Sequence record: NC_048016.1
Direction: 5' to 3' (one strand)
DNA: 64,000 nucleotides
Shown here: in pieces, positions 3,587 to 59,602 of the stretch
How the letters are laid out: the number at the start of each line of letters is the position of its first letter
Position numbering within the stretch: the first letter of the stretch is position 1
The notes under the pieces: model-generated
Told to the model about the DNA's origin: nothing
The model's input: the letters and a program-made list of their open reading frames with translations, nothing else
The model's database searches: none
Made by a program: the position numbers and the translations under genes

Positions 3587-3624
3587 CCTCCTTTCCTTCG
3601 GGAAGGGAGGATTCCTTCTTTTTT
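3587..3624 (+). terminator. Intrinsic terminator
   Basis: CCTCCTTTCC-TTCG-GGAAGGGAGG then T-rich tract. Confidence 0.8.
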
Positions 3625-3743
3625 ACGCCTAGGCGTTATTCTACGAGTATAACCTGTGCGAATCGAATCATCATAGCCGTTAACCACAAAACGCCTTAGA
3701 ACGCGTTACAGAGCGTCTATGGGCCTTACTTCGAACGCATGAA

Positions 3744-3768
3744 ATTTCAGATAGATATTACTAAGGTG
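3744..3768 (+). promoter_or_regulatory. Candidate early (virion RNAP) promoter, copy 1
   Basis: ATTTCAGATAGATATTAC-taag-GTG; motif repeated 6 times, each ahead of a gene cluster. Confidence 0.7.
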
Positions 3769-3819
3769 AACGAATACATTAATCGTTCTACATCGACTAT
3801 CTAACTGTAAGGAATAATC

Positions 3820-4200
3820 ATGTCTAAAGTAATCTCTACTGAAATGAAAGCTCTGGTTAAGTCTTCCCCGTTCTATCTGATGATGCTGCTTTGCGCTAAA
3901 GATTCTGGTGTGGAAGAAACCATCGATGCCATCAAAGCTTGGGAAGAGCAGAACATGCCTAAGCTGCTTGACGTGATGAACCTGCCAGATGCTGAGGTAC
4001 CACACGAAGCCAAGCTGATTGCGTTAGTTTATAATTCAAAGTTCAGTCGCCCGTTTGAAGCAGACGACCTGCACGGCATGATTGACGAGTTCTTGGCACG
4101 CGTTGATGCCACGCCGGAACTGGCTGAAGAAGAGCTGAAGCCGTATGGTTCAGCCCGTGCTTATTACACCGCGAAGAAAGCAGAGTTCGCTAACGTCTAA
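3820..4200 (+). CDS. Hypothetical early protein (126 aa)
   Basis: RBS GTAAGGAATAATC; first gene after promoter motif. Confidence 0.75.
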   Translation: MSKVISTEMKALVKSSPFYLMMLLCAKDSGVEETIDAIKAWEEQNMPKLLDVMNLPDAEVPHEAKLIALVYNSKFSRPFEADDLHGMIDEFLARVDATPELAEEELKPYGSARAYYTAKKAEFANV

Positions 4201-4209
4201 GGAAACGCT

Positions 4210-4392
4210 ATGACAATCTCAGGAGTAGGCTCAAGCTATGGTTACGAATCGAAGCGTGTCACTCCTGAGGAGCGTCATGCACGTATCCAAGCCCGTATCA
4301 ACATGCTGACCATTGAACTGGCAGCGGCTAAGACCCGTGGTGATATGGCAGAAGTGTCCCGTATCGCTGCACTCATTGCTGAACTAAAATAA
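4210..4392 (+). CDS. Small protein with UVR-like C-terminal helical hairpin (60 aa)
   Basis: RBS TAAGGA; C-terminus LTIELAAAKTRGDMAEVSRIAALIAELK. Confidence 0.6.
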   Translation: MTISGVGSSYGYESKRVTPEERHARIQARINMLTIELAAAKTRGDMAEVSRIAALIAELK

Positions 4393-4415
4393 TCGACTAT
4401 TCAAAGAGGCCCATT

Positions 4416-4559
4416 ATGTTAACTCGTAACCACCTGAAAGCTATCGCCGGCATCGTTCTGTTTGTCGCTGTTGCGTGCTCTATCATCACTGTCAATAACG
4501 ATTACAACCATTGTGTTGACTTAGGCAACTCTGCAGCCCAGTGCACAGGACGTGGCTAA
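4416..4559 (+). CDS. Small membrane protein (47 aa), not in ORF track
   Basis: Hand translation MLTRNHLKAIAGIVLFVAVACSIITVNNDYNHCVDLGNSAAQCTGRG*; AAGAGG RBS; fills the gap between 4392 and 4561. Confidence 0.65.
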   Translation: MLTRNHLKAIAGIVLFVAVACSIITVNNDYNHCVDLGNSAAQCTGRG

Positions 4560-4560
4560 G

Positions 4561-4746
4561 ATGACTTTCTCTGACGCACAGTTCAACGAGTTCTTAACTA
4601 ACCCACGCATCAAACGTGAGTGGGATAACCTGTCCAACGGTGCAACGCATCGTCAGCAGGATGAGCAGGCAGTCCGTGTGACTGCCCAAGTATTCGCCGT
4701 AGACATGATGGGCAACGTAAGCCCACTGGAGCAATATAATGACTGA
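4561..4746 (+). CDS. Hypothetical protein (61 aa)
   Basis: ATG immediately after the previous stop; overlaps next gene by 8 bp. Confidence 0.6.
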   Translation: MTFSDAQFNEFLTNPRIKREWDNLSNGATHRQQDEQAVRVTAQVFAVDMMGNVSPLEQYND

Positions 4747-5080: not shown

Positions 5081-5089
5081 CAACCAACG

Positions 5090-5115
5090 GCCACCTTCGG
5101 GTGGCTTTCTTTTTT
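5090..5115 (+). terminator. Intrinsic terminator
   Basis: GCCACC-TTCG-GGTGGC then T tract. Confidence 0.8.
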
Positions 5116-6913: not shown

Positions 6914-6921
6914 TTAATAAG

Positions 6922-9207: not shown

Positions 9208-9741
9208 ATGCGAATTCGTTTTTACCCATCGTGGGTGGATCAACCTAACATAGATAATGCGGCCGCCAGTAAAAAGTTAGAAGAGCTACAAGCGGAGTTC
9301 TTTAACTGGTTATATGACTGCCCGCAGGGGTTTAGTTCCAAGCTGTTACCGGAACAGTCTCCTGTCGCATTGTTTAAATCGTTTATGGCAGCAGACCCTG
9401 CTCCCATTAAATATTATGACCAAGTGCTTAACTTGGTTGAGAAAGGTACGGAAAGCTCGCTCGCCGATTTATATGGGCTAACGAGTTCCGCTGAGTTACG
9501 CTGGGTCTTCTCCCAACGTAATGATATGATTGTCGCCACGTTGTCAGAAGCGAAACCCCACCACTCACATGTGAGTTTTTCGATTGACGACGACAAGGCA
9601 GCAAAGAAGACGTTCTGCGCAGAACTTTTTAAATATGTGCGTACCAAGACTCGCGTCGTGGATGATTCGTTCAGCACTTCAACGCAGTTTGCTACACATC
9701 AGGTGCTGACGCAAATTTACGCATGTCATTTATTCAACTAG
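9208..9741 (+). CDS. Conserved hypothetical protein upstream of MCP (177 aa)
   Basis: ATG 9208 behind GGAG; listed 9106 start lies inside the helicase; syntenic position. Confidence 0.7.
   Translation: MRIRFYPSWVDQPNIDNAAASKKLEELQAEFFNWLYDCPQGFSSKLLPEQSPVALFKSFMAADPAPIKYYDQVLNLVEKGTESSLADLYGLTSSAELRWVFSQRNDMIVATLSEAKPHHSHVSFSIDDDKAAKKTFCAELFKYVRTKTRVVDDSFSTSTQFATHQVLTQIYACHLFN
9248..9274 (-). promoter_or_regulatory. Candidate helicase promoter TTTTAC-N16-TATGT embedded in the opposite gene
   Basis: + strand ACATA(9248-52)...GTAAAA(9269-74), 54 nt upstream of the helicase ATG. Confidence 0.5.
9613..9638 (+). promoter_or_regulatory. Candidate MCP promoter variant TTCTGC-N15-TATGT
   Basis: Same spacing as the bipartite motif, about 110 nt upstream of MCP; inside a CDS so could be chance. 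Confidence 0.35.
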
Positions 9742-14201: not shown

Positions 14202-14238
14202 CCCCTAACCCTTGCGGTTAGGGGTTCTTCTCTTTTTT
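14202..14238 (+). terminator. Intrinsic terminator
   Basis: CCCCTAACC-CTTGC-GGTTAGGGG then T tract. Confidence 0.8.
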
Positions 14239-14260
14239 ACATCAGCCGCACACTGTATGT
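14235..14260 (+). promoter_or_regulatory. Bipartite promoter candidate TTTTAC-N15-TATGT
   Basis: Exact motif, also at 42567 and 46875. Confidence 0.55.
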
Positions 14261-15349: not shown

Positions 15350-17119
15350 GTGTTTAAAGATGCCATACGACGACTTCAGGAGGATAAACGCATTGCTACG
15401 TTTAACCGTGCAGTTGCAGAAGGTGTAGGTTACACCCAAGCAAAGGACGGGATACACGAGCGTGTCAACACAATCCTTCGACGGGAACTAACCTACGACC
15501 GGGATAATAACCCACGTCTGCCAGAAGGGTTAGGTTATGTTGGCTATCGCTTTATGTCGCCTTTTGAATCATTCATCTTTAAAATCAGTCGACAAGACAG
15601 CCGCAGTGGCCGTGGTAAAGCACCGATTACAATTGCTGAAACCGATACGTACATGATTGGCGCTCGCTTCCGTATTCCGGGAGAAAGTAAAGTCTTGACT
15701 CGTCCGATGTATCTGCCGTTTATCCGTCGCGGTGGGTTGATGAATTACTGGGGCACAAGCTACCATGTTGCACCGGTTATCCACCAACCCGGGATCTGCC
15801 AAGAGCATAACGGCCTGTTTGTAAACTTCGACTTCACCCGCAAGGTGTCCCTGAAGTTTGGCAAGCACCCTGTGAAGATACTGGTGAATGGTCGCAAGGA
15901 AGAGTTGTACATTCCGGGCACATCGAACCTGTATACACCGAAGAACCCAACCGGGCACGACGCGGATGAAAAGCCGTTGGTGTACTGGCTGTTCGGTAAG
16001 TACGGTTTCACCGATGCTATCAAACGGTATACCGGCGTGGATGTGAAAATCATTCCAGCTTACACCATCCCGGAAGTGGACTTAGAAGAGAACGTCATTA
16101 TCTCTTCGGGTGCTGACCCGCGTGTGTCTCGTACGATTCAATACGCGCTTCAGTTGCCAGTGTCTGCTTTCCCGAACATGGATAAGCCACGTTGGGAGCA
16201 AGACGAGCACACCTTGCTGGTGATGTGTGGTGCCTTCTTTAAAGCAGCGCACTATTACGCCAGTAAGCAGAACAGTCGCAGTGGCTTGAGCCAACTGACC
16301 CCACTGTTCACCAAGCTCGATGAATTCTCGCAAGAAGAGGATGTGGCGAACCTGAACTCACCCGGCGTCTGGAAAGAAGTCTTGGGTCGCAGTATCATGG
16401 GAACCAAAACCTCGGATGTGGAATTGCATCGCAGTATGGCGACACACTTCGGCGAGTGTCCGCGTTACTTAAGCGACACGTTCCGCGGTGAGTTGATGGT
16501 GTCAGACCCGGATATCGATCCGGACATGGATACCTTCGACTTTTTAATGTACGCCACCAAGCTCATGATTCGTACCCGCCTGACTCGCCAAGACGACATC
16601 CCGTCGATGTTTGGCAAGCGTCTGACGGTGGTGGATTATCTGTTGCTTGGCACGCAGGGCTTTACCAGTACGGTATCCCGTATTCGTTGGAAGCTGGAAG
16701 GCTTGGATGATAAGTCATCTGAGAGTTGCGGCACCACGGTGAAAGGACACCTGAACAAAGACATCAACCACAATCTCGTTACGCGCAGTATCACCAGTAA
16801 CGGGGCCATCAGTTTCTTCAACGCGTCTACCGAATCCATGGTACTGGCTGTGTCAACGCATGCCATCAGCCAGACGGAAACGGATAACAAGAAGAAGAAA
16901 GGTGGTAAGACAGTTAACCTGAACGACCGTACGAAACACGCCAGTGCTTCCCATGCGGTGTGTGGTAACATCTACTACGTTCCGAAGTCAAGCCCGTACA
17001 AATACGGTATCCTCAACCAGTACATGCAGACATCACGTAATCTCGTGATGGGCTACAACCCGAAACTCGAAACCGTTGTCCGTGAAACACAGGACGATAT
17101 CTCGAAGATCGGTCGATAA
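15350..17119 (+). CDS. Non-virion RNA polymerase beta-like subunit, N-terminal part (phiKZ gp123-type, 589 aa)
   Basis: GTG start with GAGGTG RBS; MYLPFIRRGG..YWGTSYHVAPV and MFGKRLTV motifs; size and position downstream of MCP. Confidence 0.72.
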   Translation: MFKDAIRRLQEDKRIATFNRAVAEGVGYTQAKDGIHERVNTILRRELTYDRDNNPRLPEGLGYVGYRFMSPFESFIFKISRQDSRSGRGKAPITIAETDTYMIGARFRIPGESKVLTRPMYLPFIRRGGLMNYWGTSYHVAPVIHQPGICQEHNGLFVNFDFTRKVSLKFGKHPVKILVNGRKEELYIPGTSNLYTPKNPTGHDADEKPLVYWLFGKYGFTDAIKRYTGVDVKIIPAYTIPEVDLEENVIISSGADPRVSRTIQYALQLPVSAFPNMDKPRWEQDEHTLLVMCGAFFKAAHYYASKQNSRSGLSQLTPLFTKLDEFSQEEDVANLNSPGVWKEVLGRSIMGTKTSDVELHRSMATHFGECPRYLSDTFRGELMVSDPDIDPDMDTFDFLMYATKLMIRTRLTRQDDIPSMFGKRLTVVDYLLLGTQGFTSTVSRIRWKLEGLDDKSSESCGTTVKGHLNKDINHNLVTRSITSNGAISFFNASTESMVLAVSTHAISQTETDNKKKKGGKTVNLNDRTKHASASHAVCGNIYYVPKSSPYKYGILNQYMQTSRNLVMGYNPKLETVVRETQDDISKIGR

Positions 17120-27659: not shown

Positions 27660-27698
27660 GTCGAGTCCTTCGGGACTCGACTTCTTTTATTTCTTTTT
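27660..27698 (+). terminator. Intrinsic terminator
   Basis: GTCGAGTCC-TTCG-GGACTCGAC then T tract. Confidence 0.88.
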
Positions 27699-27718
27699 AC
27701 ATTTTGACGTCTTTATGT
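27695..27718 (+). promoter_or_regulatory. Bipartite promoter variant TTTTAC-N13-TATGT
   Basis: Same elements with a 2 nt shorter spacer. Confidence 0.4.
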
Positions 27719-27744
27719 GTATTTTCACCTCAAGGGCAGCTCCC

Positions 27745-40298: not shown

Positions 40299-40334
40299 TA
40301 GACCCATCGACCTTTTATCCGTAAGGAGTAATCT

Positions 40335-40982: not shown

Positions 40983-41062
40983 TAATTTACAGCACCTACC
41001 GATGTTATAGCCGCCGCTGTCCGGTTAAAGACAGCCCCAACCTTAATTGAGAGAAAATAGAA

Positions 41063-41824
41063 ATGGCTAAAGTATTTGCGACCTACCAAGAGATGCAGCA
41101 GACAGTTGATGTCATGGCAACGATGATTTCCATCAACCACAAACGTCGGCTGGTTTTTTATCGTGAGAAAGCAACCAACCATTCTGTGCGCACCATCCGT
41201 ACCGCAATTATTGATCTGACAACAGACGTGGTCACGCCATTGCAGGCCTCGTTTAAGATGGACGGTCCGACCAATGCTCCATTGACCCCAATGGCGAAAT
41301 GGAAAGGGTTTCGTCATGCCTTCTCTAGGTTCTTCTTTACGCGTATTGCTCGTAAACCGGAGTTGTTGTTACTGGCGAACAACCGTGACCTCAACTTACT
41401 GGTAACGGAGCTGCCTGAGTTAGCGTATCTGTTGGAATTCAACAAATACCTGAAACGGGCCTGCTTCACGCACATCGCAGCAGAAGACATGGAGAGCAAG
41501 GACGGTTGGCCGACCTACTTTACGTGGTCATCAACGCACCGCCATCAACACAGTGTCCGCCAGATACTCGTAGGGCGTACACTGAAATGGCGTGGCAATG
41601 GTGTCAGCAGCAGTCTGCCGCATGTCAACGTTGAGGTTAATATCTCAAAGTACGGCATCACGGCGAAAGACATCGGTAAGATTCAATACCTGAGTTTTGC
41701 CTTGACCTATCCGGTTGCAGATTGGCCAAAGATTGACGATTTACTGCAAGACCCGCAGATTGAGCCACTGGTTGACCTGTGGTTATGTCCGCGTATTACT
41801 ATCGAGCCGAAGCACGCCGGTTAA
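41063..41824 (+). CDS. Hypothetical protein (253 aa)
   Basis: Long ORF in operon. Confidence 0.7.
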   Translation: MAKVFATYQEMQQTVDVMATMISINHKRRLVFYREKATNHSVRTIRTAIIDLTTDVVTPLQASFKMDGPTNAPLTPMAKWKGFRHAFSRFFFTRIARKPELLLLANNRDLNLLVTELPELAYLLEFNKYLKRACFTHIAAEDMESKDGWPTYFTWSSTHRHQHSVRQILVGRTLKWRGNGVSSSLPHVNVEVNISKYGITAKDIGKIQYLSFALTYPVADWPKIDDLLQDPQIEPLVDLWLCPRITIEPKHAG

Positions 41825-41855
41825 AGCGTGACCCTTACTCATTGGAGATAAAAGA

Positions 41856-42530
41856 ATGGCAACACTGGATTTCGTTAAGAAAGGTATGGCGATTGAAGAA
41901 CTGACAAAGAAGCCGAGCGTGGTAGAGCACCCTGAACTCCCAACGATTATGATGGCGGGACAGAAGCTGCTTCTGCTGAGCGACTCCGTTGCTAACATCC
42001 ACTTCATTGTGGCGGAAGCCGGCGGCTTTGTTACGCGTGTCTTCAACCGGGTAAAGCCTGTGGCTGATGGAAAGGCCACGCTCCTTATCTATCGTCAAAT
42101 CATTCGCGACGAACGCGGCATGTACTTCTTTAAAGTCTTGGCCAGTAAGCCTAAGGCGTTGGAAGCTTTCATGAAGCAAGACCAGCAGGGACTGATTGCA
42201 GCTTCACCGCTGTTCTACGGTCTGTGCCGGGCGTACGTGGAATCAGGACAACACCGCATCAGCGGTTTAGACACACGCGAACAGTGGTCTGCCCCGCAAT
42301 GGGTGGGTTCGCTGCGGGGTGAAGTGGCCGGGAAAGCCATTAACTTCAAACGCACCGTGGGTTATCGTCCTGCAACCAAAGATACACGTGTTGTCTATCG
42401 CTTCGAAGGCGCATTCGGAATGACCCTGACCTTAGCGCAGGACTTACCGGGTGTGTCGTGGAGCAAAGCTGCGGACTATTTAGCGTTGCCGAAAGTCACG
42501 GCAATTCTCAAAGAGTTCTACGAGCTGTAA
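41856..42530 (+). CDS. Hypothetical protein (224 aa)
   Basis: GGAGA RBS; terminator follows. Confidence 0.7.
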   Translation: MATLDFVKKGMAIEELTKKPSVVEHPELPTIMMAGQKLLLLSDSVANIHFIVAEAGGFVTRVFNRVKPVADGKATLLIYRQIIRDERGMYFFKVLASKPKALEAFMKQDQQGLIAASPLFYGLCRAYVESGQHRISGLDTREQWSAPQWVGSLRGEVAGKAINFKRTVGYRPATKDTRVVYRFEGAFGMTLTLAQDLPGVSWSKAADYLALPKVTAILKEFYEL

Positions 42531-42535
42531 TAAGC

Positions 42536-42570
42536 AGGCCACCTTCGGGTGGTCTTTTTCTTTTATTTTT
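42536..42570 (+). terminator. Intrinsic terminator
   Basis: AGGCCACC-TTCG-GGTGGTCT then T tract. Confidence 0.85.
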
Positions 42571-42592
42571 ACACTAACTCCCGAATGTATGT
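42567..42592 (+). promoter_or_regulatory. Bipartite promoter candidate TTTTAC-N15-TATGT
   Basis: Exact motif 31 nt upstream of the ATG at 42624. Confidence 0.55.
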
Positions 42593-42623
42593 ATCACGCT
42601 CATTATAATCTCAGGAGTCATTC

Positions 42624-43577
42624 ATGCCCATTATTCGACTGTCAGTCGGTGTGCTAAAAACCCAAGAGTTTGCACATCTGGCCGATAACCCCAAACTGTG
42701 GATGCGACTTAAGTCGCACGTTAAAGATGACGACATGCGCGTCTATGCCTTGGTTACCGCCGGTGGCATTCCCCAAGCTTACGCGGTGTGCAGTTACACC
42801 AGTGGGTCTACGTCGCTGCTGTGCAGTTACTTCGAAGACCTTATCCCGGCCAGCATTAACCGTCCGTTCTGGTTGGCGCTACTCGACTACACCGGCTTTG
42901 ACGTTCTGCGTATCGTTGCCCCGAACGACACCATCGGTGAAATCGTTAAGGGTTACGAGTTCAAACTGGTTGAAGAGATGTGGGTCGGTAACGTTACACC
43001 GTACCGTGGCTTCCCGGTCTCGGAGAACATCCACAGTGTCTCTGGTGATGCGTTCTATAAGCTCAGCACCGAAGATGTGGAAGACCTGCACAAACTCATC
43101 TGGGCGGCAACTGTCGCTGAAATTAATACCGATGTCTTGGAACGCCGTCTCACGCAGATGGTGCCCAACGGTATGGATGAAGTGCTGGGACGCACCGGGG
43201 ATTACCACTACGAAGTGTTTGTGCTGCGTGAACCCGAGCTGAAGAATAAAATCATTGGCTTTGCCTACTGCCACAAACTCGAACCGGGTTATATTGCGGT
43301 TGGGGGTCTAGGTGTTGCACAGGAGCACCAGAACAAACGTCACGGGCGTAAGCTTGCGGCGGCGGTATTGGCCCACGCCTCGGGGATGACCGATCAGGTG
43401 TACGCAACGGTGTTGTCGCAGAACCATGCGTCACGTCATCTGTTTGCGGATATCCTAAAGTTCAAACCGGTGATGTCCGTTTACGGCATCAGTCGCAACG
43501 AAGTGGATAAGCCTGTACCGCACGTAACCAAGGTCGCTGCTGAGAAGCGCGCCAAACAGATGCTGGGACTGTTATAG
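42624..43577 (+). CDS. Tandem GNAT acetyltransferase (317 aa)
   Basis: C-terminal half IIGFAYC..YIAVGGLGVAQEHQNKRHGRKLA..TVLSQNHASRHLF; N-terminal half a degenerate GNAT. Confidence 0.78.
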   Translation: MPIIRLSVGVLKTQEFAHLADNPKLWMRLKSHVKDDDMRVYALVTAGGIPQAYAVCSYTSGSTSLLCSYFEDLIPASINRPFWLALLDYTGFDVLRIVAPNDTIGEIVKGYEFKLVEEMWVGNVTPYRGFPVSENIHSVSGDAFYKLSTEDVEDLHKLIWAATVAEINTDVLERRLTQMVPNGMDEVLGRTGDYHYEVFVLREPELKNKIIGFAYCHKLEPGYIAVGGLGVAQEHQNKRHGRKLAAAVLAHASGMTDQVYATVLSQNHASRHLFADILKFKPVMSVYGISRNEVDKPVPHVTKVAAEKRAKQMLGLL

Positions 43578-43613
43578 TCCGAAGGCACGGCTAACTATTA
43601 TAAAAGGGTGAGC

Positions 43614-43640
43614 GACGCTCTGGATAGCTTACAGGGCGTC
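43614..43640 (+). promoter_or_regulatory. Hairpin in the dam leader
   Basis: GACGCTCTG-9 nt-CAGGGCGTC just before the GAGGT RBS; TATTATAA upstream. Confidence 0.4.
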
Positions 43641-43656
43641 TGACGAGGTATTTCGG

Positions 43657-44478
43657 ATGAAGCGATCGTTTATAAAATGGATGGGGGGTAAATCCCGTGT
43701 AATGGATGCGCTGAAGCACCATCTTCCCAAGGGGGACGTGTTCATTGAACCGTTCGTTGGCGGTGGGTCCGTGTTTCTGAACACCGACTATCCTGAATAC
43801 ATTTTGGCCGATTCAAATCCTGACCTTATTCAGTTAATGGAAGTTGCCGCATACCAGCCGGCGTTGTTAATTGAGCAAGCGAAGGTGTTGTTCGGCGGTG
43901 GTGAACGTGATGATTACATGGCGCACCGCAAGGCCTTTAATACCCGGGACGGGGAGCCGCACGTCAGGGCTGCCATGTTCCTGTATTTGAATCGCCATGG
44001 TTACAACGGTCTGTGCCGTTACAATAAATCTGGGGGGTATAACGTTCCGTACGGTCGCCACCCCAGTAAGCCGTATCTGCCCGAGAAGGAGATTCTCGAA
44101 TTTGCAGAGAAAGTGAAGAAAGGAAAGGTGACTTTCTTGTGTGCTGACTTTCAGCAGACGGTTGCACTCGCACAACAGCAGAATAAGCGTAAGGTCGTCA
44201 TCTATTGTGATCCGCCTTACGTACCCAGTAGCAAAACATCTTCCTTTGCGCAGTACCACAAAAACGAATTTGGTCAAGCCGAGCACCGTGCATTAGCCAA
44301 CGTGCTGATGGACGCCAGACGCTCGGGGGCCAAAGTGGTATTGTCAAACTCCGATACCGTTCTGACCCGCGATATCTATCACGGCTTTACCTTTCACACG
44401 GTAGAAGTCGGTAGACACATGGCGGCGAAGAAAGAGAAACGGGGTAAAGTAATTGAAGTGATTGCAACGCTATTCTGA
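43657..44478 (+). CDS. dam: DNA adenine methyltransferase, Dam family (273 aa)
   Basis: FIKWMGGKS, FIEPFVGGGSV, FLYLNRHGYNGLCRYN..GGYNVPYG, IYCDPPY, LSNSD. Confidence 0.95.
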   Translation: MKRSFIKWMGGKSRVMDALKHHLPKGDVFIEPFVGGGSVFLNTDYPEYILADSNPDLIQLMEVAAYQPALLIEQAKVLFGGGERDDYMAHRKAFNTRDGEPHVRAAMFLYLNRHGYNGLCRYNKSGGYNVPYGRHPSKPYLPEKEILEFAEKVKKGKVTFLCADFQQTVALAQQQNKRKVVIYCDPPYVPSSKTSSFAQYHKNEFGQAEHRALANVLMDARRSGAKVVLSNSDTVLTRDIYHGFTFHTVEVGRHMAAKKEKRGKVIEVIATLF

Positions 44479-44487
44479 GAGGTGCCT

Positions 44488-45318
44488 ATGCGAGTTTATG
44501 ATTTACGCGACCAAACCACACACCGTGAGAAGGTGAACTTCAACGGAGCAACGACCATGATAGGCAGTGTCTATCGGGCCGTCCAACACTTACTGGCGGG
44601 CAAGCTGGTGAGTTCGGAAGTGTTCCTTGTGGTCACCCGGGGTAACAACGCACAGATGATGTTCACCTGTGACCGTGATAACCGCTGTCTGTATATCCAC
44701 GGTGTGACACCTTTGGCGGACACGCCTTTTACAAATTGGAAGACACTGCTGAAGCACCTTGAGTGTGAGGTCGTGGATGTGACGTGTAACCCGCACGATT
44801 ATGAACGGCACGACGATTGCAGGAAGATGGGGTTGGTCAATGTCAGTCAGCGCGTCAAGATAGCGGTGGCGCGTCAAGCACCCCTGCCGGAGATGGTGTA
44901 CTGGCGATTGGATGAAATCAACCTCACGCAATCTGTCGAGCTTGGGCGCATTGCGCTGAACCGTTCGGGTAAGTTTGGTCAGTCCCTGCTTGAGGGCTTA
45001 GCCCTTGGCAATACCACCGGCGTTGTGGTACCCAATGATGCAGGCGACATCGTTGGGGCGCTGTTGTATGTTGATGGCGAAAAGGAAATTCAATCGGAGG
45101 GCGTCATCATTAATGCGGCCGCAGGTACCCCTGTGTACGTGCAGTGGTTTATGTTATTGATGAATGCTTTTATACGTGAAGCTAAGCGGTTACGTAAACC
45201 GGCTATCGCCTCCTTTGCTCCGGCAATCGATGTGAAAGTACCGATACCGCATGTTGAGACTACAGTTGTCACCGTCCACTTCGGTTTGGCTGGACGGGAG
45301 GCAGGCGCAGTCTTTTAG
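44488..45318 (+). CDS. Possible degenerate tandem GNAT-fold protein (276 aa)
   Basis: Two repeats of strand-strand-helix-strand pattern, CRKMGL and FIREAKRLRKPAI; no clear motif A. Confidence 0.45.
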   Translation: MRVYDLRDQTTHREKVNFNGATTMIGSVYRAVQHLLAGKLVSSEVFLVVTRGNNAQMMFTCDRDNRCLYIHGVTPLADTPFTNWKTLLKHLECEVVDVTCNPHDYERHDDCRKMGLVNVSQRVKIAVARQAPLPEMVYWRLDEINLTQSVELGRIALNRSGKFGQSLLEGLALGNTTGVVVPNDAGDIVGALLYVDGEKEIQSEGVIINAAAGTPVYVQWFMLLMNAFIREAKRLRKPAIASFAPAIDVKVPIPHVETTVVTVHFGLAGREAGAVF

Positions 45319-45327
45319 GAGAGACTG

Positions 45328-46065
45328 ATGATTAATGATATCACCGAGCAGGTTCTGCGTGGTGAGGGCATCGACCCTCAGTACGTGGATATGGTCAACG
45401 CGTGGCTCGCGCTGCCCGTTGAGCAGAAGACTGAAAAGCGTGTCTTCATTATCGCCAAAAACCGTTTGATGTTTATGGTTATCGACCGGGAGTTCTTAGT
45501 GGGTACTGTACAACAGTACATTGCCCTTAATGACGGCCCGGCGGATATGACGATGCTACCGGCGTATTTAGGTTTGCGTGAGATTCACCTTTATACCCAA
45601 CAGCCGTCACTCTATGAACCAGACGGATGGCGATTAAGCCGGGTTATCATGACGAAAGAAACCGGGTTCTCTACCTCGTTTCCTGTTTCTGTTGAGACGA
45701 ACGCAGTGCTCAGTGAAAACGAGTTATGGGATTTCTTAGTGCTGATGCGAGAACAAGGTCAGACGGAAGTGCTAAGAATGCTCGGCGAAGGTACGGCGTG
45801 TATCCATGTTTACCGTGATGGGTTAGAACGTGGGTTCATTGTAACAAACGTTGAGGGGCCACTGGGTCTCTTGGCAATGGTAGGCGAAGGTATACCGGCG
45901 TTCGACGCACTTATTCGGGCGTTTGACTATATTGCGGGTCAGCGGGGCTTTGGCACCGTCGCAGGCACTTACGGCAACCCCTTACTGGGTGTCGCTGCAG
46001 AAATTGGGTATGTACCCACACTCACCACTGTCATCCTGACAGACCATTTAACAGAGAAGGAGTAA
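45328..46065 (+). CDS. Possible degenerate tandem GNAT-fold protein (245 aa)
   Basis: RGFIVT..LLAMVG..FDALIRAFDYIAGQRGFGTV..AAEIGY pattern. Confidence 0.45.
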   Translation: MINDITEQVLRGEGIDPQYVDMVNAWLALPVEQKTEKRVFIIAKNRLMFMVIDREFLVGTVQQYIALNDGPADMTMLPAYLGLREIHLYTQQPSLYEPDGWRLSRVIMTKETGFSTSFPVSVETNAVLSENELWDFLVLMREQGQTEVLRMLGEGTACIHVYRDGLERGFIVTNVEGPLGLLAMVGEGIPAFDALIRAFDYIAGQRGFGTVAGTYGNPLLGVAAEIGYVPTLTTVILTDHLTEKE

Positions 46066-46067
46066 TA

Positions 46068-46346
46068 ATGCAGATCAATCGTCGTTTAGCAAAAAACAAA
46101 GACATCGTTTATGAAGTTAAAGACGGTAACGATGTCGCGTTCCACGGTTTAGTTGACGTCAACACGCGTCGCTTACACATCGTGGTACCCGAAACTGTGA
46201 CACGCGGTATTGAGCGCGCTGTGGTTAAGCTTGTTGCGAAAGCCAAGCATCGGGATGGGATTCTCAGTGAGTACACCACTCACGAGTTTTCTGAGTTTGT
46301 TGAAGAAGGCGGTGAAACGCTGATTAAGCAGGCAGTCGCTGTTTAA
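46068..46346 (+). CDS. Hypothetical protein (92 aa)
   Basis: AAGGAGTAAT RBS. Confidence 0.7.
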   Translation: MQINRRLAKNKDIVYEVKDGNDVAFHGLVDVNTRRLHIVVPETVTRGIERAVVKLVAKAKHRDGILSEYTTHEFSEFVEEGGETLIKQAVAV

Positions 46347-46379
46347 TTGTATGACCCTACAACTGTTCGAGGTTAGACC

Positions 46380-46838
46380 ATGAAAGTAATCGAACTTGAG
46401 CAGCTGCCACAGCATGACTTCGACCAAGGCCTCCGTGACCAAACGGGCGTCACTGGCGAACAATTCTGTTCGACCTATAACGAAGTCATCACCGGTGAAC
46501 CTCTGGACGACGAGCACATGTCGCGTTTTGAGAAATCACTGGTGGGGGCGCTGAACGAGCGTGCGGGTGCGGTTGCACTTCTGCACGAACTGGCCTTTTC
46601 GGATATCGATCCGTATAACGCAAGGCTGATTCTGGAAAAGGGTGTTGTCCCCGCGGATGAGATTCTTGACAAGGCAGCGGTATTGCGGGCCAACATCGAC
46701 GAGCTTATCGAGGACTATCTGCCTCAGTTAGCCGAGCTCGAGGTTACTGGCGAAGGCGACAATGTCCGTCAACGCTTAGCCCGTTATGTCATCGCATCGA
46801 TTCTGTTTGACGATCGCGAAGAAGAAAACGGCGACTGA
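46380..46838 (+). CDS. Hypothetical acidic protein (152 aa)
   Basis: GAGG RBS; terminator follows. Confidence 0.7.
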   Translation: MKVIELEQLPQHDFDQGLRDQTGVTGEQFCSTYNEVITGEPLDDEHMSRFEKSLVGALNERAGAVALLHELAFSDIDPYNARLILEKGVVPADEILDKAAVLRANIDELIEDYLPQLAELEVTGEGDNVRQRLARYVIASILFDDREEENGD

Positions 46839-46843
46839 GAATG

Positions 46844-46878
46844 ACCCCTTACCGCAAGGTAGGGGGTTTTCTTTTTTT
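46844..46878 (+). terminator. Intrinsic terminator
   Basis: ACCCCTTACC-GCAA-GGTAGGGGGT then T tract. Confidence 0.8.
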
Positions 46879-46900
46879 ACACTGCACGTCCTCTTTATGT
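46875..46900 (+). promoter_or_regulatory. Bipartite promoter candidate TTTTAC-N15-TATGT
   Basis: Exact motif 28 nt upstream of the ATG at 46929. Confidence 0.55.
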
Positions 46901-46928
46901 ACAACAACTGAAACGGAGTAATAACCCC

Positions 46929-47255
46929 ATGTGGTTAAGCGCTATCAATCGTGACCTCACGAAATATAAGAACACCACCCTGTCTTCAACTGGCGACCAG
47001 GGTCAAGAAATCGAAGTTGGTCTGGGCTACGTCACTGGGATGGAAGAAGGCCAGTATGTGGTAGAAGACGACCAGCAGAACGAGTTTTTGCTGTTCCACC
47101 CTGAGGTGGACGTCTCTGAGATTAAGCCTCCGTGTGCGGTTGCGTCGTGGCAAGACCCGTCGAACAACGAATGGATGTGGGCGGTTGCAGAAGTCACCAG
47201 TCCGTCAACCTTCAAAATCGTGGGCAAGCACCATGTCGAACCTGAACCGCATTGA
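46929..47255 (+). CDS. Hypothetical protein (108 aa)
   Basis: GGAGTAAT RBS. Confidence 0.7.
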   Translation: MWLSAINRDLTKYKNTTLSSTGDQGQEIEVGLGYVTGMEEGQYVVEDDQQNEFLLFHPEVDVSEIKPPCAVASWQDPSNNEWMWAVAEVTSPSTFKIVGKHHVEPEPH

Positions 47256-47559
47256 GTTAGGGGCCGACTGCGATGCAACGCTTCGTGCACGTGTCGCAGC
47301 GTTTGGTCCGCCGTTAGGGCAATCGCTTGAGTGTCGTGGCTTCTACGCGGAGTGCATTGATTTTGACCGGGAGAACGTAACGTTCCGCCCGCGTGACAGC
47401 GGGGATGAGTTTACCCTGCCAACGTCGGTGTTCGCGTATATCCCCTGTGTTGGGGCCGTGACGTATATCGACCGGGTGCATCATCGGGTGCTGATTCATA
47501 TCCCGGACAGTCCGTCCATCGTCGATGGCATCTCCGGCTTTTCTCGCGAACGCACATAA
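47233..47559 (+). CDS. Hypothetical protein (108 aa)
   Basis: ATG 47233, 23 bp overlap; terminator follows. Confidence 0.6.
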   Translation: MSNLNRIELGADCDATLRARVAAFGPPLGQSLECRGFYAECIDFDRENVTFRPRDSGDEFTLPTSVFAYIPCVGAVTYIDRVHHRVLIHIPDSPSIVDGISGFSRERT

Positions 47560-47562
47560 CCT

Positions 47563-47602
47563 GACTCCCTACCCGCAAAGGTAGGGAGTCTGTATTTCAT
47601 TT
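47563..47602 (+). terminator. Intrinsic terminator
   Basis: GACTCCCTACC-6 nt-GGTAGGGAGTC then T-rich tract. Confidence 0.75.
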
Positions 47603-47623
47603 CAGATAGATATTATTTTCACG
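47599..47623 (+). promoter_or_regulatory. Candidate early promoter, copy 6
   Basis: ATTTCAGATAGATATTAT-tttc-ACG. Confidence 0.7.
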
Positions 47624-47652
47624 AACCCATCCTTTCACTCTCAGGAGTCAGC

Positions 47653-47916
47653 ATGTTTACTCGTTACAATGTCGTGGGCAAGAAAGGCTCACACCTTAAA
47701 CTCGAAGAACGCTTAGGCGTTACTGAGAAACCGCGCGAATTAAAGACGCGGGAAATTGATATCCCCAACCACGCCTACAGCAAAGTGGCACTGGGTGATG
47801 TACTGGCACTTCCAACCGAACTCGACACCGGTTCTGAGGTGTGGGCAACCGCTGATATTCAGCACAGTCCCCACGCCATGACCCGTCAGTTCCCATTAAT
47901 GCGTCGGGGTATGTAA
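47653..47916 (+). CDS. Early hypothetical protein (87 aa)
   Basis: AGGAG RBS; TAATG overlap with next gene. Confidence 0.7.
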   Translation: MFTRYNVVGKKGSHLKLEERLGVTEKPRELKTREIDIPNHAYSKVALGDVLALPTELDTGSEVWATADIQHSPHAMTRQFPLMRRGM

Positions 47917-48386
47917 TGGACTTTGCAGTTGTTAGTACCGACACTATCGTTCGGATGAAGAAAGCTGCAGCCATTACGTTGGCGACTGAACGACTCATCG
48001 ACAAGAACATCGCTGCGCACTGTGAACTGTTAAACAAAGTTTCAGGTGTGGCGACCGTCTACTCCTGCGAGGGCCATCTAACCCAAGAAGACGGCTTGCC
48101 ACGCCGGCCGTATATCATGATGGCCTGCACCCGTCAGGGTTTGCCTTTCGTGGAAGCTTTAATGAAAGCCGCGCTGGACGACCCTACCTACGCGGTCTGT
48201 CGTTGTGAAGTGACTTTGGCGGAACTGCCGTGGGTTGAAAACAGTCAGGGGTACGAGTATGAACCCCAAGACTTTTACTACGCGTGGATACTGCGGGGTG
48301 ACACGTCAGACCACCACATGTTAATGAGTCAGATTCGCGAGCACTGGCTTGTTGCCATTAACAACACCATCAAACAATTTTCATAA
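47916..48386 (+). CDS. Tyw3-like-motif protein, paralog 1 (156 aa)
   Basis: LLNKVSGVATVYSCEGH resembles the LN..T.SSCSG motif of Tyw3. Confidence 0.45.
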   Translation: MDFAVVSTDTIVRMKKAAAITLATERLIDKNIAAHCELLNKVSGVATVYSCEGHLTQEDGLPRRPYIMMACTRQGLPFVEALMKAALDDPTYAVCRCEVTLAELPWVENSQGYEYEPQDFYYAWILRGDTSDHHMLMSQIREHWLVAINNTIKQFS

Positions 48387-48395
48387 GGACCGACG

Positions 48396-48848
48396 ATGTT
48401 TGCCAATACCACAGTCAGTGATGAGATGCTGGCCTTCTTCTCTTCCCGCACACAAGCGCAGTTAACGACCGGTGGTGTCATTGATATCCCGATGGTGCCT
48501 GTGATTGAAAGTCTTAACCAGTTACCACATGTCGCCACTGTGCTCTGCTGTGGCGGGCACATCCGTGTGGAGAATGGCAAACGGCGTACACGAACGCCCC
48601 ACCACGTTATGCTCGTGGTGGATGCAGTGGGTTATGCAACCTTAGAGCGCATTTACCGTCTCTGGCAGGAGACCGAATACGCAGACAATATCCATCTCTG
48701 TGTCTCCCGGTTATTGCACATGCGGGAAAGTGGCTTTAAAGGGTATTACCCAGTGTGGAAGTTTCAACTTAACCTGCGCCCTGAACCTGAAGTTATTGAG
48801 GGAATGTGCAAGGCGTGGGTGCGTATCGCTAATGCCTGTAAGGAATAA
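48396..48848 (+). CDS. Tyw3-like-motif protein, paralog 2 (150 aa)
   Basis: SLNQLPHVATVLCCGGH. Confidence 0.45.
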   Translation: MFANTTVSDEMLAFFSSRTQAQLTTGGVIDIPMVPVIESLNQLPHVATVLCCGGHIRVENGKRRTRTPHHVMLVVDAVGYATLERIYRLWQETEYADNIHLCVSRLLHMRESGFKGYYPVWKFQLNLRPEPEVIEGMCKAWVRIANACKE

Positions 48849-48859
48849 TCCTCTGTATT

Positions 48860-48890
48860 GCTAGCCTCTGGGGCTAGCTTTCTTCTTTTT
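48860..48890 (+). terminator. Intrinsic terminator
   Basis: GCTAGCC-TCTG-GGGCTAGC hairpin then T tract. Confidence 0.75.
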
Positions 48891-48914
48891 ATTCGCAAAA
48901 ATAATAGTCCCGTT

Positions 48915-48940
48915 TTTCACGTATTAGACGTTTCTAATGT
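48915..48940 (+). promoter_or_regulatory. Bipartite promoter variant TTTCAC-N15-AATGT
   Basis: Same spacing, directly before the AAGGAG RBS of 48957. Confidence 0.4.
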
Positions 48941-48956
48941 AAGGAGAATATACGCA

Positions 48957-49580
48957 ATGGCAACCCCAAAGAAACGTAATAAAAAGTACAACCGTGTGAA
49001 GTCCATGGACAACATCGCACTCAGCGCTGCACAGAACGCCCTGAACCGTATCGCCTTCGTGGGCAGCTCTATCCGACCGCTTGCCCCTTATGGCGGGCGG
49101 TCTTTTCAATTAACATCAACCGGCAACATGCGCATCGCCGTGGCTGAGATTCTGACTTCGTCGCTGTTCGAAGAAGCACGGGATTGGCGGGCATGGATTC
49201 TGCATCTGTATCAGGACGGTGAAGCGATTACTGCTGAGAGCATGCGCTTGCTGCTGCCGGAATACACGTTGGCGGACTTCACTGAGCACGCTGACTTCCT
49301 TATCGAACAAACCCGCGATAAAGAACAGGTGCACTACGGCTATGCCGTCTTTGCCTCCCCGACCGACAAGTTCGATTTGGACGCCATGGATGAAGGCCTC
49401 ACGGAGAACTTCATGCACTCCGGTATCCTCGACAAGTCTCAGCACTTAACGCCTGAAGAGCACAAGGTGGATAAGGCTTTGATGCTGGCAAAGATTGTGG
49501 GTTATCAGACCAAGTTTGATCTCACCCGCAAGCACAAAGTGGAAGTGTCCGAAAGCTACGTTAAAACCCACGAAGAATAA
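48957..49580 (+). CDS. Hypothetical protein with basic N-terminus (207 aa)
   Basis: ATG 48957 behind GTAAGGAG; PKKRNKKYNR. Confidence 0.75.
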   Translation: MATPKKRNKKYNRVKSMDNIALSAAQNALNRIAFVGSSIRPLAPYGGRSFQLTSTGNMRIAVAEILTSSLFEEARDWRAWILHLYQDGEAITAESMRLLLPEYTLADFTEHADFLIEQTRDKEQVHYGYAVFASPTDKFDLDAMDEGLTENFMHSGILDKSQHLTPEEHKVDKALMLAKIVGYQTKFDLTRKHKVEVSESYVKTHEE

Positions 49581-49621
49581 CGGTTCGTATTACAACTCAA
49601 TTACCCACAAGGATTAATCTC

Positions 49622-50059
49622 ATGGTCGCGAAAATTAAAGTAATCAAAACTGAAGAAGTAAAACATATCGCCAACGGTATTCTGTTGGAGCGTCCGCTGT
49701 CGGACTTCGCTAATCCCGACGATCTTCAATCCGCGTTCCGTCGTCTGGTGCGGGGGCTGCTCTACTGCGAAAAAGGTGTGCCGGATACCTCTGGCATGAA
49801 CGCCTTTGATGCACTGTTTCGAGTGAAAACCATCGAGCCCGATCGCGTCTGTGGTTCCATCGTTGATGCCACGGTCGACGTGGTGGATAACAAGGTTGTG
49901 GTGCGGGGTACCTTTGTCCCGGCCGGGCCATTGAAAGAGATGGCAAAGGTCGCGATGGATATCCTCGATGAGCTGCCACTGGTTCCGCGCTACGTGTTGA
50001 ACTACGACGGCAAAATTGCATCGGTTGAGACGTGGGACCTGCTGGACCTGCAGGGATGA
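49622..50059 (+). CDS. Probable catalytically inactive prohead-protease (S80-like) paralog (145 aa)
   Basis: LYCEKGVP ~ LYGE.GHP; R...I...VCGSI; VRGTFVPAGPL ~ G...P.GP.G; LVPR ~ FSIR; ETWDL ~ ITWD; catalytic His and Ser positions substituted. Confidence 0.6.
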   Translation: MVAKIKVIKTEEVKHIANGILLERPLSDFANPDDLQSAFRRLVRGLLYCEKGVPDTSGMNAFDALFRVKTIEPDRVCGSIVDATVDVVDNKVVVRGTFVPAGPLKEMAKVAMDILDELPLVPRYVLNYDGKIASVETWDLLDLQG

Positions 50060-57436: not shown

Positions 57437-57445
57437 AAAAGAAGC

Positions 57446-57477
57446 GGTAGCCTTAGGGCTACCCTCTTTTATTTTTT
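57446..57477 (+). terminator. Intrinsic terminator, possibly bidirectional
   Basis: GGTAGCC-TTAG-GGCTACC, T tract after and A tract before. Confidence 0.75.
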
Positions 57478-57636
57478 GGCCCTAAATCAAATACGTTCAG
57501 CCGCCCTACTTTCTTTTTTTATTTCTGGTGAGGCCCCGTGTCAACCCGGTAATGGTTTACGCACACCCCTGTATATTTTTTTGCCTATGGCGAGAGTGCC
57601 ACCTACACCACACCAATGTAAAATGAGGACATCCCC

Positions 57637-59535
57637 ATGGCTGGACAATCTGTCCCTGCTCCAAAAGCGCTTGATTTAACCGCGTCCATTGTGGGCGGAA
57701 CCGTTCTCTTAAACAAAGATGGCTTTATCTACGAAATGCCACTGTCTGCCCTGTTGCAGAAATTCGATTTAGCAGCGGAAGATGGCCTGGGCCAAATTGG
57801 CCGTTGTGCAACCGTTGCCAACCTGCGCAAAATGGAACCCAAGACACCGGGTCAGCGCATTGACATTGCTGAATACGCACCGGGCAGCAAAAACGGTGGC
57901 GGTTACTTCTTCTACGATGCAGATGACAAAACGTCAAAAGACGATGGTGGCTTCTGTATCGTTACCCCAAAAGGCGCTCGTTGGAAGCGCGACATCGGAC
58001 ACATCGGTGCACTGAACGTCACCCACTTCGGGGCTATCCCGGATGGTAAGACTGACTGTATCGATGCCGTTAACAAGATGTGGGCGTTCTCCAAAGCAAA
58101 CTTGATTCAGTTGGGTATTCAGTTCCCGTCTGGCAAGTTCTTCCTGTCTAAGTTCGCACAGGCCAGTGAAGTGGGTTACTTCCGTGTTGTTGGCTTTAAC
58201 AGCACCAACGCGTTTGGTTACTTCAACACCACGACCATCTATTCCGATGACCAAGATGAGTTCGTGTTTGATGTGAATGCGCGCCGGACTGAAATCAGCG
58301 GAATCGAATTCAACGGTCAAATCGATTTGGGTAACAAGCAGTACCGTTGCTCGAAGAAAGGTTTCTTCCGTAACGTCGATCCGGGCGGCCAGTATATCCG
58401 TGTCTCGAACTTCATGAGCTCATGGGTTGGCGGCACAAGCTTTGACATGCTGGACAACCTCGACACCAAGTTCGATCAGTTCTACGCCTCTCGGTGTACG
58501 GGTACCGTCCTGAAAGGGCGTCCGTCGTTCCGTGATGCAGGCGGTTGGAACCACCTGACTGCTATCGAGCTGACCAACTTCAACATGCAGTATTGTACTG
58601 GCAACCTCGTGTTCGACCTGCCACGCGCAACCCAGTCCCTGATTCGTAACGGCTGGATTGAACACTGTGAGTTCCCGGGTAACCTGTCTGATGGCCAGTG
58701 GCAGATTGACTCGTTCTCCATGGAAGACTGTGACAACCCAATGCAGGTGCAGAATGCCCGCTTGGTGCGTTTCGCAACCAACCTGCAAGGCAAGTCTAAC
58801 TGGGATGCCAACAGCGGTGAAAGCGGCTGGAAGGAAATCTCTGCCTACGAGTACGGCATGACGGACATCCACAACCACGGTATCAAAACCGACGGTTCGG
58901 TGCAGGCCGGTTACTACGGCTCACTGGTGAAGATGGACAACAACACCGGTGCTGCGCAGTGGTTCCATGCCTGCTGGGTGAAACCGGTTTCCATTGGTGA
59001 CACTATCCAACTGCGGATGTTTGGTACACAGGCGTACAGCGGGAACAAAATTGATAACGATGTTATCAGTGGCGGCCGCCAGTCCGGTGGCTATGCAGAC
59101 GTGTTCATCAAAGTCCTGCAAGACTCGTCTCTGGCGATTCAGTGGGACGGGGTTGGTAGTTGTCCGATTCTGGATGTGCGTTCTGACAACAGCAAAGGTT
59201 CAACCAACATCTACGTGAAAGTGGCGGCATGGTCACGTAACGTCGGTGTGGAGTGCTACACCACCAGTAAGACCCGTTTCGAAGCGGGTATCCGTTTCCA
59301 GATTCAGCGCAAAGGCGTGAAGGTCGACGAAGCGGCAATTACCGGTGACGCATTCCCGACTGTCCCAACGGGCATGACCCTCGGTACCAAAAACGGCATC
59401 GGTTGGAACGGTCAGGGCGACCTGCTGATGAAGTTCGAACTGCAGAACGGGTATCTGCCTGTGAAGATTCAGTCTCCGTCTTCCGGTAAGATTACCCAAG
59501 GTTACATCAAGGTAGAGACCTCTTTACCTAAGTAA
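57637..59535 (+). CDS. Tailspike / exopolysaccharide depolymerase, beta-helix type (632 aa)
   Basis: GGGYF.YD...DDGG..IVT..GARWKR, NVTHFGAIPDGKTD, IQFPSGKF pectate-lyase-like start; recalled similarity to Erwinia phage EPS depolymerases and AmsF. Confidence 0.78.
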   Translation: MAGQSVPAPKALDLTASIVGGTVLLNKDGFIYEMPLSALLQKFDLAAEDGLGQIGRCATVANLRKMEPKTPGQRIDIAEYAPGSKNGGGYFFYDADDKTSKDDGGFCIVTPKGARWKRDIGHIGALNVTHFGAIPDGKTDCIDAVNKMWAFSKANLIQLGIQFPSGKFFLSKFAQASEVGYFRVVGFNSTNAFGYFNTTTIYSDDQDEFVFDVNARRTEISGIEFNGQIDLGNKQYRCSKKGFFRNVDPGGQYIRVSNFMSSWVGGTSFDMLDNLDTKFDQFYASRCTGTVLKGRPSFRDAGGWNHLTAIELTNFNMQYCTGNLVFDLPRATQSLIRNGWIEHCEFPGNLSDGQWQIDSFSMEDCDNPMQVQNARLVRFATNLQGKSNWDANSGESGWKEISAYEYGMTDIHNHGIKTDGSVQAGYYGSLVKMDNNTGAAQWFHACWVKPVSIGDTIQLRMFGTQAYSGNKIDNDVISGGRQSGGYADVFIKVLQDSSLAIQWDGVGSCPILDVRSDNSKGSTNIYVKVAAWSRNVGVECYTTSKTRFEAGIRFQIQRKGVKVDEAAITGDAFPTVPTGMTLGTKNGIGWNGQGDLLMKFELQNGYLPVKIQSPSSGKITQGYIKVETSLPK

Positions 59536-59539
59536 TCTG

Positions 59540-59574
59540 GTGAGACCCCTTCGGGGGTCTCACTTTTCTTTTTT
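59540..59574 (+). terminator. Intrinsic terminator
   Basis: GTGAGACCC-CTTCG-GGGTCTCAC then T tract. Confidence 0.85.
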
Positions 59575-59576
59575 GT

Positions 59577-59602
59577 CTCTACGTTATCTTTCTGTTATAT
59601 GT
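59577..59602 (+). promoter_or_regulatory. Bipartite promoter variant CTCTAC-N15-TATGT
   Basis: Intergenic, ahead of the tail paralog array. Confidence 0.45.

Follow-up and report, generated by a model that had tools for sequence, protein, structure and literature searches.

A rigidly spaced two-box motif, probably a middle promoter, in Erwinia phage Wellington and other SPN3US-like jumbo phages

The locus and its source genome

The window, i.e., the whole stretch of 64,000 nucleotides (nt) that was analysed, is 100% identical to positions 62001-126000, plus strand, of the 244,950-bp genome of Erwinia phage Wellington (genus Wellingtonvirus; MH426724 / NC_048016), a SPN3US-like relative of phage phiKZ. 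It carries repeated copies of a bipartite motif, TTTTAC followed after 15 bases (N15) by TATGT, which had been proposed in an initial annotation as a promoter of the phage non-virion RNA polymerase. Genes were called with a hexamer-scored model that reproduces the GenBank annotation within the window, and the relatives pEa_SNUABM_11 (SNUABM_11, same genus), Caitlin (Machinavirus), SPN3US (Seoulvirus) and phiKZ were compared as full genomes.

Wellington encodes homologues of the phiKZ non-virion RNA polymerase proteins PHIKZ055, 068, 071-074 and 123, as well as of the virion polymerase proteins PHIKZ080, 149, 178 and 180; the numbers 068, 080, 123 and 149 were checked against annotation and the remaining ones were assigned from genome coordinates. 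The homologue of GP123, the phiKZ non-virion polymerase subunit that binds TATG (PMC12809450), lies in the window:

15350-17119, plus strand: gp94, phiKZ GP123 homologue (blastp 23% identity, 515 amino acids, E 4e-24)

Bipartite sites in the window

Sites were scored with a weight matrix of two blocks, refined iteratively from the exact copies, for which a threshold of 18.3 bits corresponds to about one match per shuffled genome. The nine copies and variants listed in the initial annotation are all present in the sequence at the coordinates given for them; five stand as members of the family (sites A to E), three (59577, 48915 and 3621) are weak and one (9613) does not belong to it. The five members and the two features next to site A are as follows:

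14202-14224, plus strand: terminator-like hairpin with a 9-bp stem and a T tail running into site A (RNA fold of the upstream 63 nt, -17.3 kcal/mol)
14235-14260, plus strand: site A, TTTTAC at 14235-14240 and TATGT at 14256-14260, exact match, 25.1 bits
14285-14295, plus strand: early-type motif GATAGATGTTA, 25 nt 3' of site A, in a tandem promoter arrangement
27695-27720, plus strand: site B, TTTTAC-N15-TGTG, 24.5-26.8 bits, kept in SNUABM_11
42567-42592, plus strand: site C, exact match, 25.0 bits
46875-46900, plus strand: site D, exact match, 28.2 bits, the top-scoring site of the genome
9248-9274, minus strand: site E, N16 spacing, 14.8 bits in Wellington (below the threshold), conserved in four genomes

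Site A lies 78 nt before gp93, which is followed by gp94, and its predicted transcription start (+1) is G 14259; its orthologues in SNUABM_11, Caitlin and SPN3US are found 78-80 nt from the start codon. The tandem order of a bipartite site and then an early-type motif before gp93-gp94 is kept in these three genomes as in Wellington. Site B, 29 nt before gp107, had been described with an N13 spacing; it is strong and conserved in SNUABM_11, and is better read as N15 with TGTG, which places the predicted +1 at G 27719 (27717 if N13 and TATG are assumed). Site C precedes gp132 (GNAT acetyltransferase) by 36 nt, with gp133 (DNA methyltransferase) following and G 42591 as the predicted +1, and site D precedes gp138 by 33 nt with a predicted +1 at G 46899 and orthologous sites in SNUABM_11 and SPN3US. 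Each of sites A to D is preceded by a GC-rich hairpin, located at 27660-27681 for site B, 42536-42555 for site C and 46843-46868 for site D.

Site E precedes the lone minus-strand gene of the DnaB-like helicase gp87, 58 nt upstream of its start codon and inside the coding sequence of gp88 on the opposite strand, with G 9249 as the predicted +1; folding found no hairpin upstream of it. The score of this copy is moderate, yet the site is kept in all four genomes at 58-59 nt from the start codon; the Wellington group has N16 there, Caitlin and SPN3US N15.

The only public runs found to hold this DNA are seed metatranscriptomes and runs of unknown type, in which it occurs as assembled contigs, uninformative on 5' ends, of a phage 95-99% identical to Wellington (window 42000-47500). 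The sequence of this relative departs from that of Wellington immediately past 42559, at the junction of terminator and promoter ahead of gp132.

Abundance, spacing and information content

Exact copies of TTTTAC-N15-TATGT occur three times in the window (14235, 42567 and 46875) against 0.04 expected, and none of 100 shuffles reached three. Throughout the Wellington genome, TTTTAC and TATGT are combined six times at N15, four times at N16 and practically never at any other spacing from 8 to 24. The gapped search against shuffled intergenic controls, which the initial annotation had named as a check, gave 12 intergenic matches of TTTAC-N15-T[AG]TG in Wellington, compared with a mean of 0.40 and a maximum of 2 in 300 dinucleotide shuffles and a mean of 0.8 at other spacings; the N15 spacing is thus enriched. 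In addition, the 7-mer TTTTTAC is present in 23 gene-oriented intergenic regions of Wellington, where 1.5 would be expected.

The weight matrix retrieved 19 sites in Wellington, 16 of which are intergenic although intergenic DNA makes up only 7.7% of the genome. Matrices trained separately on each of the four SPN3US-like genomes gave 16-26 sites per genome, of which 84-94% fall in intergenic DNA. Every matrix site is co-oriented with the next gene, and most lie 24-40 nt ahead of its start codon; in Wellington the T-R-T-G box (R, A or G) is usually located at 20-40 nt.

A logo was pooled from the 69 intergenic N15 sites of the four genomes and numbered with the G of T-R-T-G as +1. Near-invariant positions are T (-25 to -21), A (-20), C (-19), R (-18), T (-3), A or G (-2), T (-1) and G (+1); the T-run with TTAC-R thus spans -25 to -18, and TTTAC itself -23 to -19. 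The spacer from the C to the T comprises 15 bases, rarely 16, without conserved letters, and the base at +2 after T-R-T-G is mostly T or A. The logo totals about 22 bits, a figure somewhat inflated by the matrix selection. In all, the motif is real, rigidly spaced, conserved, promoter-like and information-rich.

Conservation in related phages

The whole-genome pattern TTTAC-N15-TATG occurs 8 times in Wellington, 12 in SNUABM_11, 13 in Caitlin and 16 in SPN3US, with about one occurrence at other spacings; the intergenic counts of TTTAC-N15-T[AG]TG in the same order are 12, 17, 18 and 18, against about 0.4 in dinucleotide shuffles. Cronobacter phage CR5 (Derbicusvirus) has an N15 peak as well (9 of 27 matches in a whole-genome pattern scan).

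Conservation at individual sites resembles a footprint. Before orthologous genes whose proteins are only 26-60% identical, both boxes are retained, equally spaced and equally far from the start codon, and the spacer and flanks diverge. For instance, the orthologues of gp132 in three genera are preceded by TTTTTAC..TGTATGT, TTTTTAC..CTTGTGA and TTTTTAC..GTTGTGA, the boxes and spacing of site C being retained in Caitlin and SPN3US despite a downstream protein identity of 26-28%. No description of this motif for SPN3US-like phages was found in a literature search that had many journals outside its reach.

A conserved sub-variant consisting of TTTTTTCAC or TTTTTTAC, then N15 and TATAG in place of TATG, was observed before the orthologues of DNA polymerase gp28 and of gp16 in three genera. 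In the Wellington genome these sites are at 11318 and 5428, outside the window.

Weak and rejected variants

The remaining listed copies are the following:

3621-3646, plus strand: TTTTAC..TACGA variant with a good upstream box (13.9 bits) and without a start-site box (downstream block -0.8 bits), doubtful
48915-48940, plus strand: TTTCAC..AATGT variant before gp143, 12.2 bits, sub-threshold, doubtful
59577-59602, plus strand: CTCTAC..TATGT variant, 12.8 bits, sub-threshold, doubtful
9613-9638, plus strand: TTCTGC..TATGT variant, 3.8 bits, inside the gp88 coding sequence

The first three had been counted as members with the same spacing, a status that they do not keep, as they reach only 12-13 bits against the threshold of 18.3 and are poorly conserved. 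The 48915 variant recurs only in SNUABM_11 and was not seen in the orthologous regions of Caitlin and SPN3US; the 59577 variant is likewise kept only in SNUABM_11 and was not seen in Caitlin or SPN3US. The orthologous upstream window inspected for the 3621 variant, that of SNUABM_11 included, contained no site that matched it.

The copy at 9613 had been placed before the major capsid protein gene, and was rejected as a family member on account of its score of 3.8 bits and its position within gp88. Its conservation is confounded by coding, since the site lies inside the gp88 coding sequence. The same segment (9612-9637, about 120 nt before the major capsid gene) consists of a perfect palindrome, GTTCTGCGCAGAAC, followed by TTTTTAAATATG, and is nearly invariant in the four genomes, which may reflect coding conservation only or an internal pair of terminator and promoter serving the capsid gene.

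A short distance beyond the 59577 variant, TATGCTGGCAGG is found at 59633-59644, about 63 nt before gp158, the first gene of the virion structural cluster. It is kept in the four genomes and the surrounding intergenic DNA is not; it is a candidate late promoter with a conserved leader.

Downstream genes

The genes downstream of above-threshold and conserved sites were surveyed with the GenBank annotation of the whole Wellington genome. Bipartite sites precede the following genes and operons:

gp87: DnaB-like helicase
gp28: DNA polymerase (weak TATAG variant)
gp244: UvsX, in an operon that includes gp246, homologue of the phiKZ virion polymerase subunit PHIKZ149
gp206: SMC-domain protein
gp231-232: nuclease and ribonuclease
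gp71 operon: dihydrofolate reductase
gp257 operon: thymidylate synthase
gp132 and gp133: GNAT acetyltransferase and DNA methyltransferase
gp93-gp94, and several hypothetical genes

No virion, tail, terminase or lysis gene annotated in Wellington directly follows a bipartite site.

A second, longer motif, TTCA-GATAGATATTA-TCnnnGTGA, was observed 40-95 nt before genes, including those of the non-virion polymerase homologues gp42 and gp46. It has 17 intergenic copies genome-wide, and about 18 copies were counted in SPN3US. Its copies in the window are:

3750, plus strand: TTCA-GATAGATATTA-TCnnnGTGA
12139, plus strand: the same motif
14285, plus strand: the same motif
36849, plus strand: the same motif
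47605, plus strand: the same motif

This motif is probably the early promoter, used by the virion polymerase, and probably the one that the initial annotation had numbered as its first. The idea that it shares the frame of a T-run, AC and TRTG with the bipartite motif was rejected, as TTTAC is present in only two of the 19 early motifs of Wellington.

Interpretation

The bipartite motif is likely a phage-specific promoter of the middle class, that of the DNA-metabolism genes, in the SPN3US-like nucleus-forming jumbo phages, and likely homologous in architecture to the middle promoters of phiKZ. Its sites stand where a promoter would be demanded, many of them directly after strong terminators and one before a lone helicase gene without a co-directional upstream transcript. 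As to the earlier claim of a two-element promoter more informative than those described, the coupling of a -24 element with TATG at fixed spacing holds in several genera, with about 22 bits against the 4-bp late consensus of phiKZ. The assignment to the non-virion polymerase fared less well: the elements are indeed coupled, but the class is probably of the middle type, distinct from the TATG-only sites before structural genes, and recognition by that polymerase would have to accommodate the behaviour of the purified phiKZ enzyme, described next.

Several points weigh against this assignment to a middle class homologous with that of phiKZ. The purified phiKZ non-virion polymerase was inactive on middle promoters in vitro, even on P62M and P78M with their positioned TATG (PMC4666361). 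Start sites and timing are predicted from sequence, for Wellington and the SPN3US-like phages alike, and the label 'middle' depends on the annotation of downstream genes, many of which are hypothetical. The N15 peak is absent from Goslar, Ea35-70, Eowyn and Vibrio phage pVp-JHP1101 when the literal pattern is used (the upstream box there may differ), and a TTAC..TATG peak at N15 is absent from phiKZ, both in the whole genome and in intergenic DNA. A matrix seeded on phiKZ failed to converge, P78M alone showing the geometry. Since the N15 coupling is absent from phiKZ and the distant relatives, homology with phiKZ rests on the TTAC core, its position and one mapped promoter. Finally, the TATG-binding pocket of GP123 is only partly conserved in gp94: when the two proteins were aligned pairwise (23% identity), gp94 shared Phe151, His331 and Ser402, had Trp in place of Tyr406, and did not keep His185, Asn186, Asn398 and Tyr399.

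Among the alternatives, the motif might be a general promoter of the non-virion polymerase, equal to the phiKZ late promoter with an upstream enhancer and without a temporal class of its own. The start-site box is indeed the phiKZ late consensus TATG, and at 18-60 nt before the start codons of genes in general, the sense strand of Wellington, SNUABM_11, Caitlin and SPN3US carries about three times as many TATG copies as the antisense strand (34-37 versus 9-13 per genome); the same crude strand test revealed no asymmetry in phiKZ (63 versus 54). However, some 95 TATG sites located 18-90 nt before genes in three genomes, most of them 30-60 nt from the start codon, lack TTTAC, and no other upstream conservation was seen at them. 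The structural-gene regions inspected likewise have TATG(A) or TATGCTGG without TTTAC, and, as far as the downstream genes are annotated, the bipartite sites are found only before DNA-metabolism genes. Two classes, bipartite and TATG-only, look like a better fit to the data than one, and a single general promoter is unlikely.

A signal other than a promoter, whether bound by a phage regulator as an operator or processed at the RNA level to yield new 5' ends from read-through transcripts, is less likely still. Processing of early transcripts was mentioned by Antonova et al. 2023 as a possible source of phiKZ middle RNAs (PMC10612078), and the gp93 site of Wellington is located upstream of an early-type motif. 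On the other hand, many bipartite sites follow efficient-looking terminators or precede a gene without co-directional upstream transcription, so that no precursor RNA is expected there; a distance of 24-40 nt to the start codon is what promoters typically show, and in phiKZ the middle 5' ends are enriched as primary by differential RNA sequencing (dRNA-seq; PMC8244752).

The reading as a host sigma-70 promoter, in which TTTACA would be the -35 and TATGTA the -10 hexamer, is highly improbable. TTTACA agrees with TTGACA at five of six positions and TATGTA starts like TATAAT, but the hexamers are separated by 14 bp instead of the 16-18 needed, and the logo, with its invariant G and without a T at -7, does not fit a -10 box. 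A consensus scan of 40000-50000 called none of the three sites there, its total of 9 equalling the 9.0 of the shuffles, and phiKZ-type phages transcribe independently of the host polymerase (PMC7598289, PMC4666361). This reading was rejected on the hexamer gap and the scan.

The contribution of terminators to the T-run had been raised as a caveat in the initial annotation. Among the 74 sites of the four genomes, 26 directly follow a GC-rich hairpin whose tail feeds part of the T-run, whereas the other 48 have no upstream terminator hairpin and still carry 3.8-5.1 T bases before AC; a hairpin test with a cut-off of -12 kcal/mol was uninformative, as 34-53% of random 56-mers pass it. Because these 48 sites keep the T-run without a hairpin, it belongs to the signal, and the intrinsic terminator tail was rejected as its source; terminator-promoter junctions are a frequent, non-obligatory context. 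That T tails and chance copies of TATGT leave the motif as a functionless by-product is barely credible, the tail's share at the 26 sites being outweighed by the AC retained with the T-run at the 48 others, the sharp N15 peak and the conservation of both boxes at orthologous sites with diverging spacers.

Possible mechanism

If the bipartite motif is a middle promoter, both boxes would be read by the phage non-virion RNA polymerase, alone or with an additional middle-stage factor. The beta-lobe pocket of gp94 would bind the start-site box in the form of single-stranded non-template DNA, as that of GP123 does in phiKZ. The TTTAC box would lie on the upstream duplex exactly where the C-terminal domain of sigma-like GP68 contacts phiKZ promoter DNA, touching the backbone at -22/-23 and -18/-19 (PMC12809450), and its reader could be gp42, the homologue of GP68, or a cofactor bound to gp42. 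The rigid N15 spacing might then reflect the constraint of two fixed reading heads on one enzyme, and the many sites straight after an intrinsic terminator would form insulated terminator-promoter junctions.

A stricter version, in which the SPN3US-like holoenzyme itself reads both boxes (the GP68 homologue TTTAC at -23 to -19, the GP123 homologue T-R-T-G) and middle and late promoters differ only by the upstream box, is possible and is offered tentatively, the balance being tilted against it. If true, it would explain both the specificity from a 4-bp TATG and the recognition of middle promoters, in a clade where they could be dissected in vitro.

Significance

How specificity arises from the 4-bp TATG and how middle promoters are recognised are questions of phiKZ-type transcription (PMC7598289, PMC10612078, PMC12809450) that the present motif addresses. 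In the SPN3US-like clade, a rigid two-box signal of about 22 bits is detectable from sequence alone, so that middle transcription in nucleus-forming jumbo phages can be approached by prediction. Each genome yields a list of about 20 candidate promoters for the mapping of start sites, together with a defined template for polymerase work in vitro and a way to assign unknown genes to temporal classes. SPN3US is moreover a genetically tractable model phage.

Comparison with known promoters

Middle promoters of phage T4 combine a MotA box near -30 with a -10 element and are transcribed by the host polymerase through sigma appropriation. The Wellington sites resemble them in the two-box design, in an upstream box that may be read by an added factor and in the replication-stage genes that follow, but differ in that a phage-encoded polymerase would be used, the downstream box overlaps the predicted start and the sequences are unrelated.

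AR9 late promoters, AACA-N6-TA/G, are recognised through template-strand uracils read by gp226 (PMC7598289). They too belong to a multisubunit non-virion polymerase of a jumbo phage, to which the Wellington motif is likewise ascribed here, and have a short box near the start; sequence, position (-11) and spacing are different, and AR9 recognition needs uracil in the DNA.

Late promoters of phiKZ consist of nothing more than TATG, whose G is +1 and whose four bases are all needed, and are transcribed in vitro by the non-virion polymerase (PMC4666361, PMC7598289). The start-site box is identical in Wellington, and the GP123 homologue gp94 is encoded in the window. The phiKZ late promoters, however, lack a conserved upstream element and precede virion genes, whereas the Wellington sites join T-R-T-G to a strong, conserved upstream box and, going by annotation, stand before DNA-metabolism genes, with no annotated virion gene directly after them, and do not qualify as late promoters of the phiKZ type.

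The closest counterparts are the middle promoters of phiKZ, described in Ceyssens 2014 (as cited), Yakunina 2015 and Wicke 2020. Their upstream element, which the initial annotation had taken for a merely weak AT-rich one, is defined as AAanTTACc centred near -24 (PMC4666361), and is also given as TACT about 22 nt upstream of primary starts mapped by dRNA-seq, after an A-rich run (PMC8244752). Two dissimilarities are apparent. The A-rich stretch just before TTAC is replaced by a T-run in Wellington, SNUABM_11 and Caitlin, SPN3US being intermediate with mixed A-rich and T-rich forms, and AAAATTTACGT, frequent among the SPN3US sites, forms a bridge from the A-rich form of phiKZ to the T-rich form of Wellington. 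Furthermore, TATG is present on few phiKZ sites, whereas the Wellington clade almost always couples T-R-T-G at the rigid N15.

The likenesses concern position, gene content and context. An element of the TTAC/TACT kind is expected about 20-24 nt upstream of the start, and TTTAC lies at -23 to -19 from the +1 assumed here, so that the TTAC core is equally far from the predicted start. The phiKZ promoters and, going by annotation, the Wellington sites precede non-structural genes and genes of the virion RNA polymerase, the latter being middle genes in phiKZ (PMC4666361), and a tandem arrangement with an early promoter is found at PHIKZ054 (PMC8244752) and predicted at gp93. Most directly, the mapped middle promoter P78M upstream of PHIKZ078, AAAATTACC, has TTAC, then exactly 15 bases, then TATG. 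Since P78M already has this TTAC-N15-TATG geometry, the Wellington motif would represent the clade's own version of a known promoter class and not a new promoter type.

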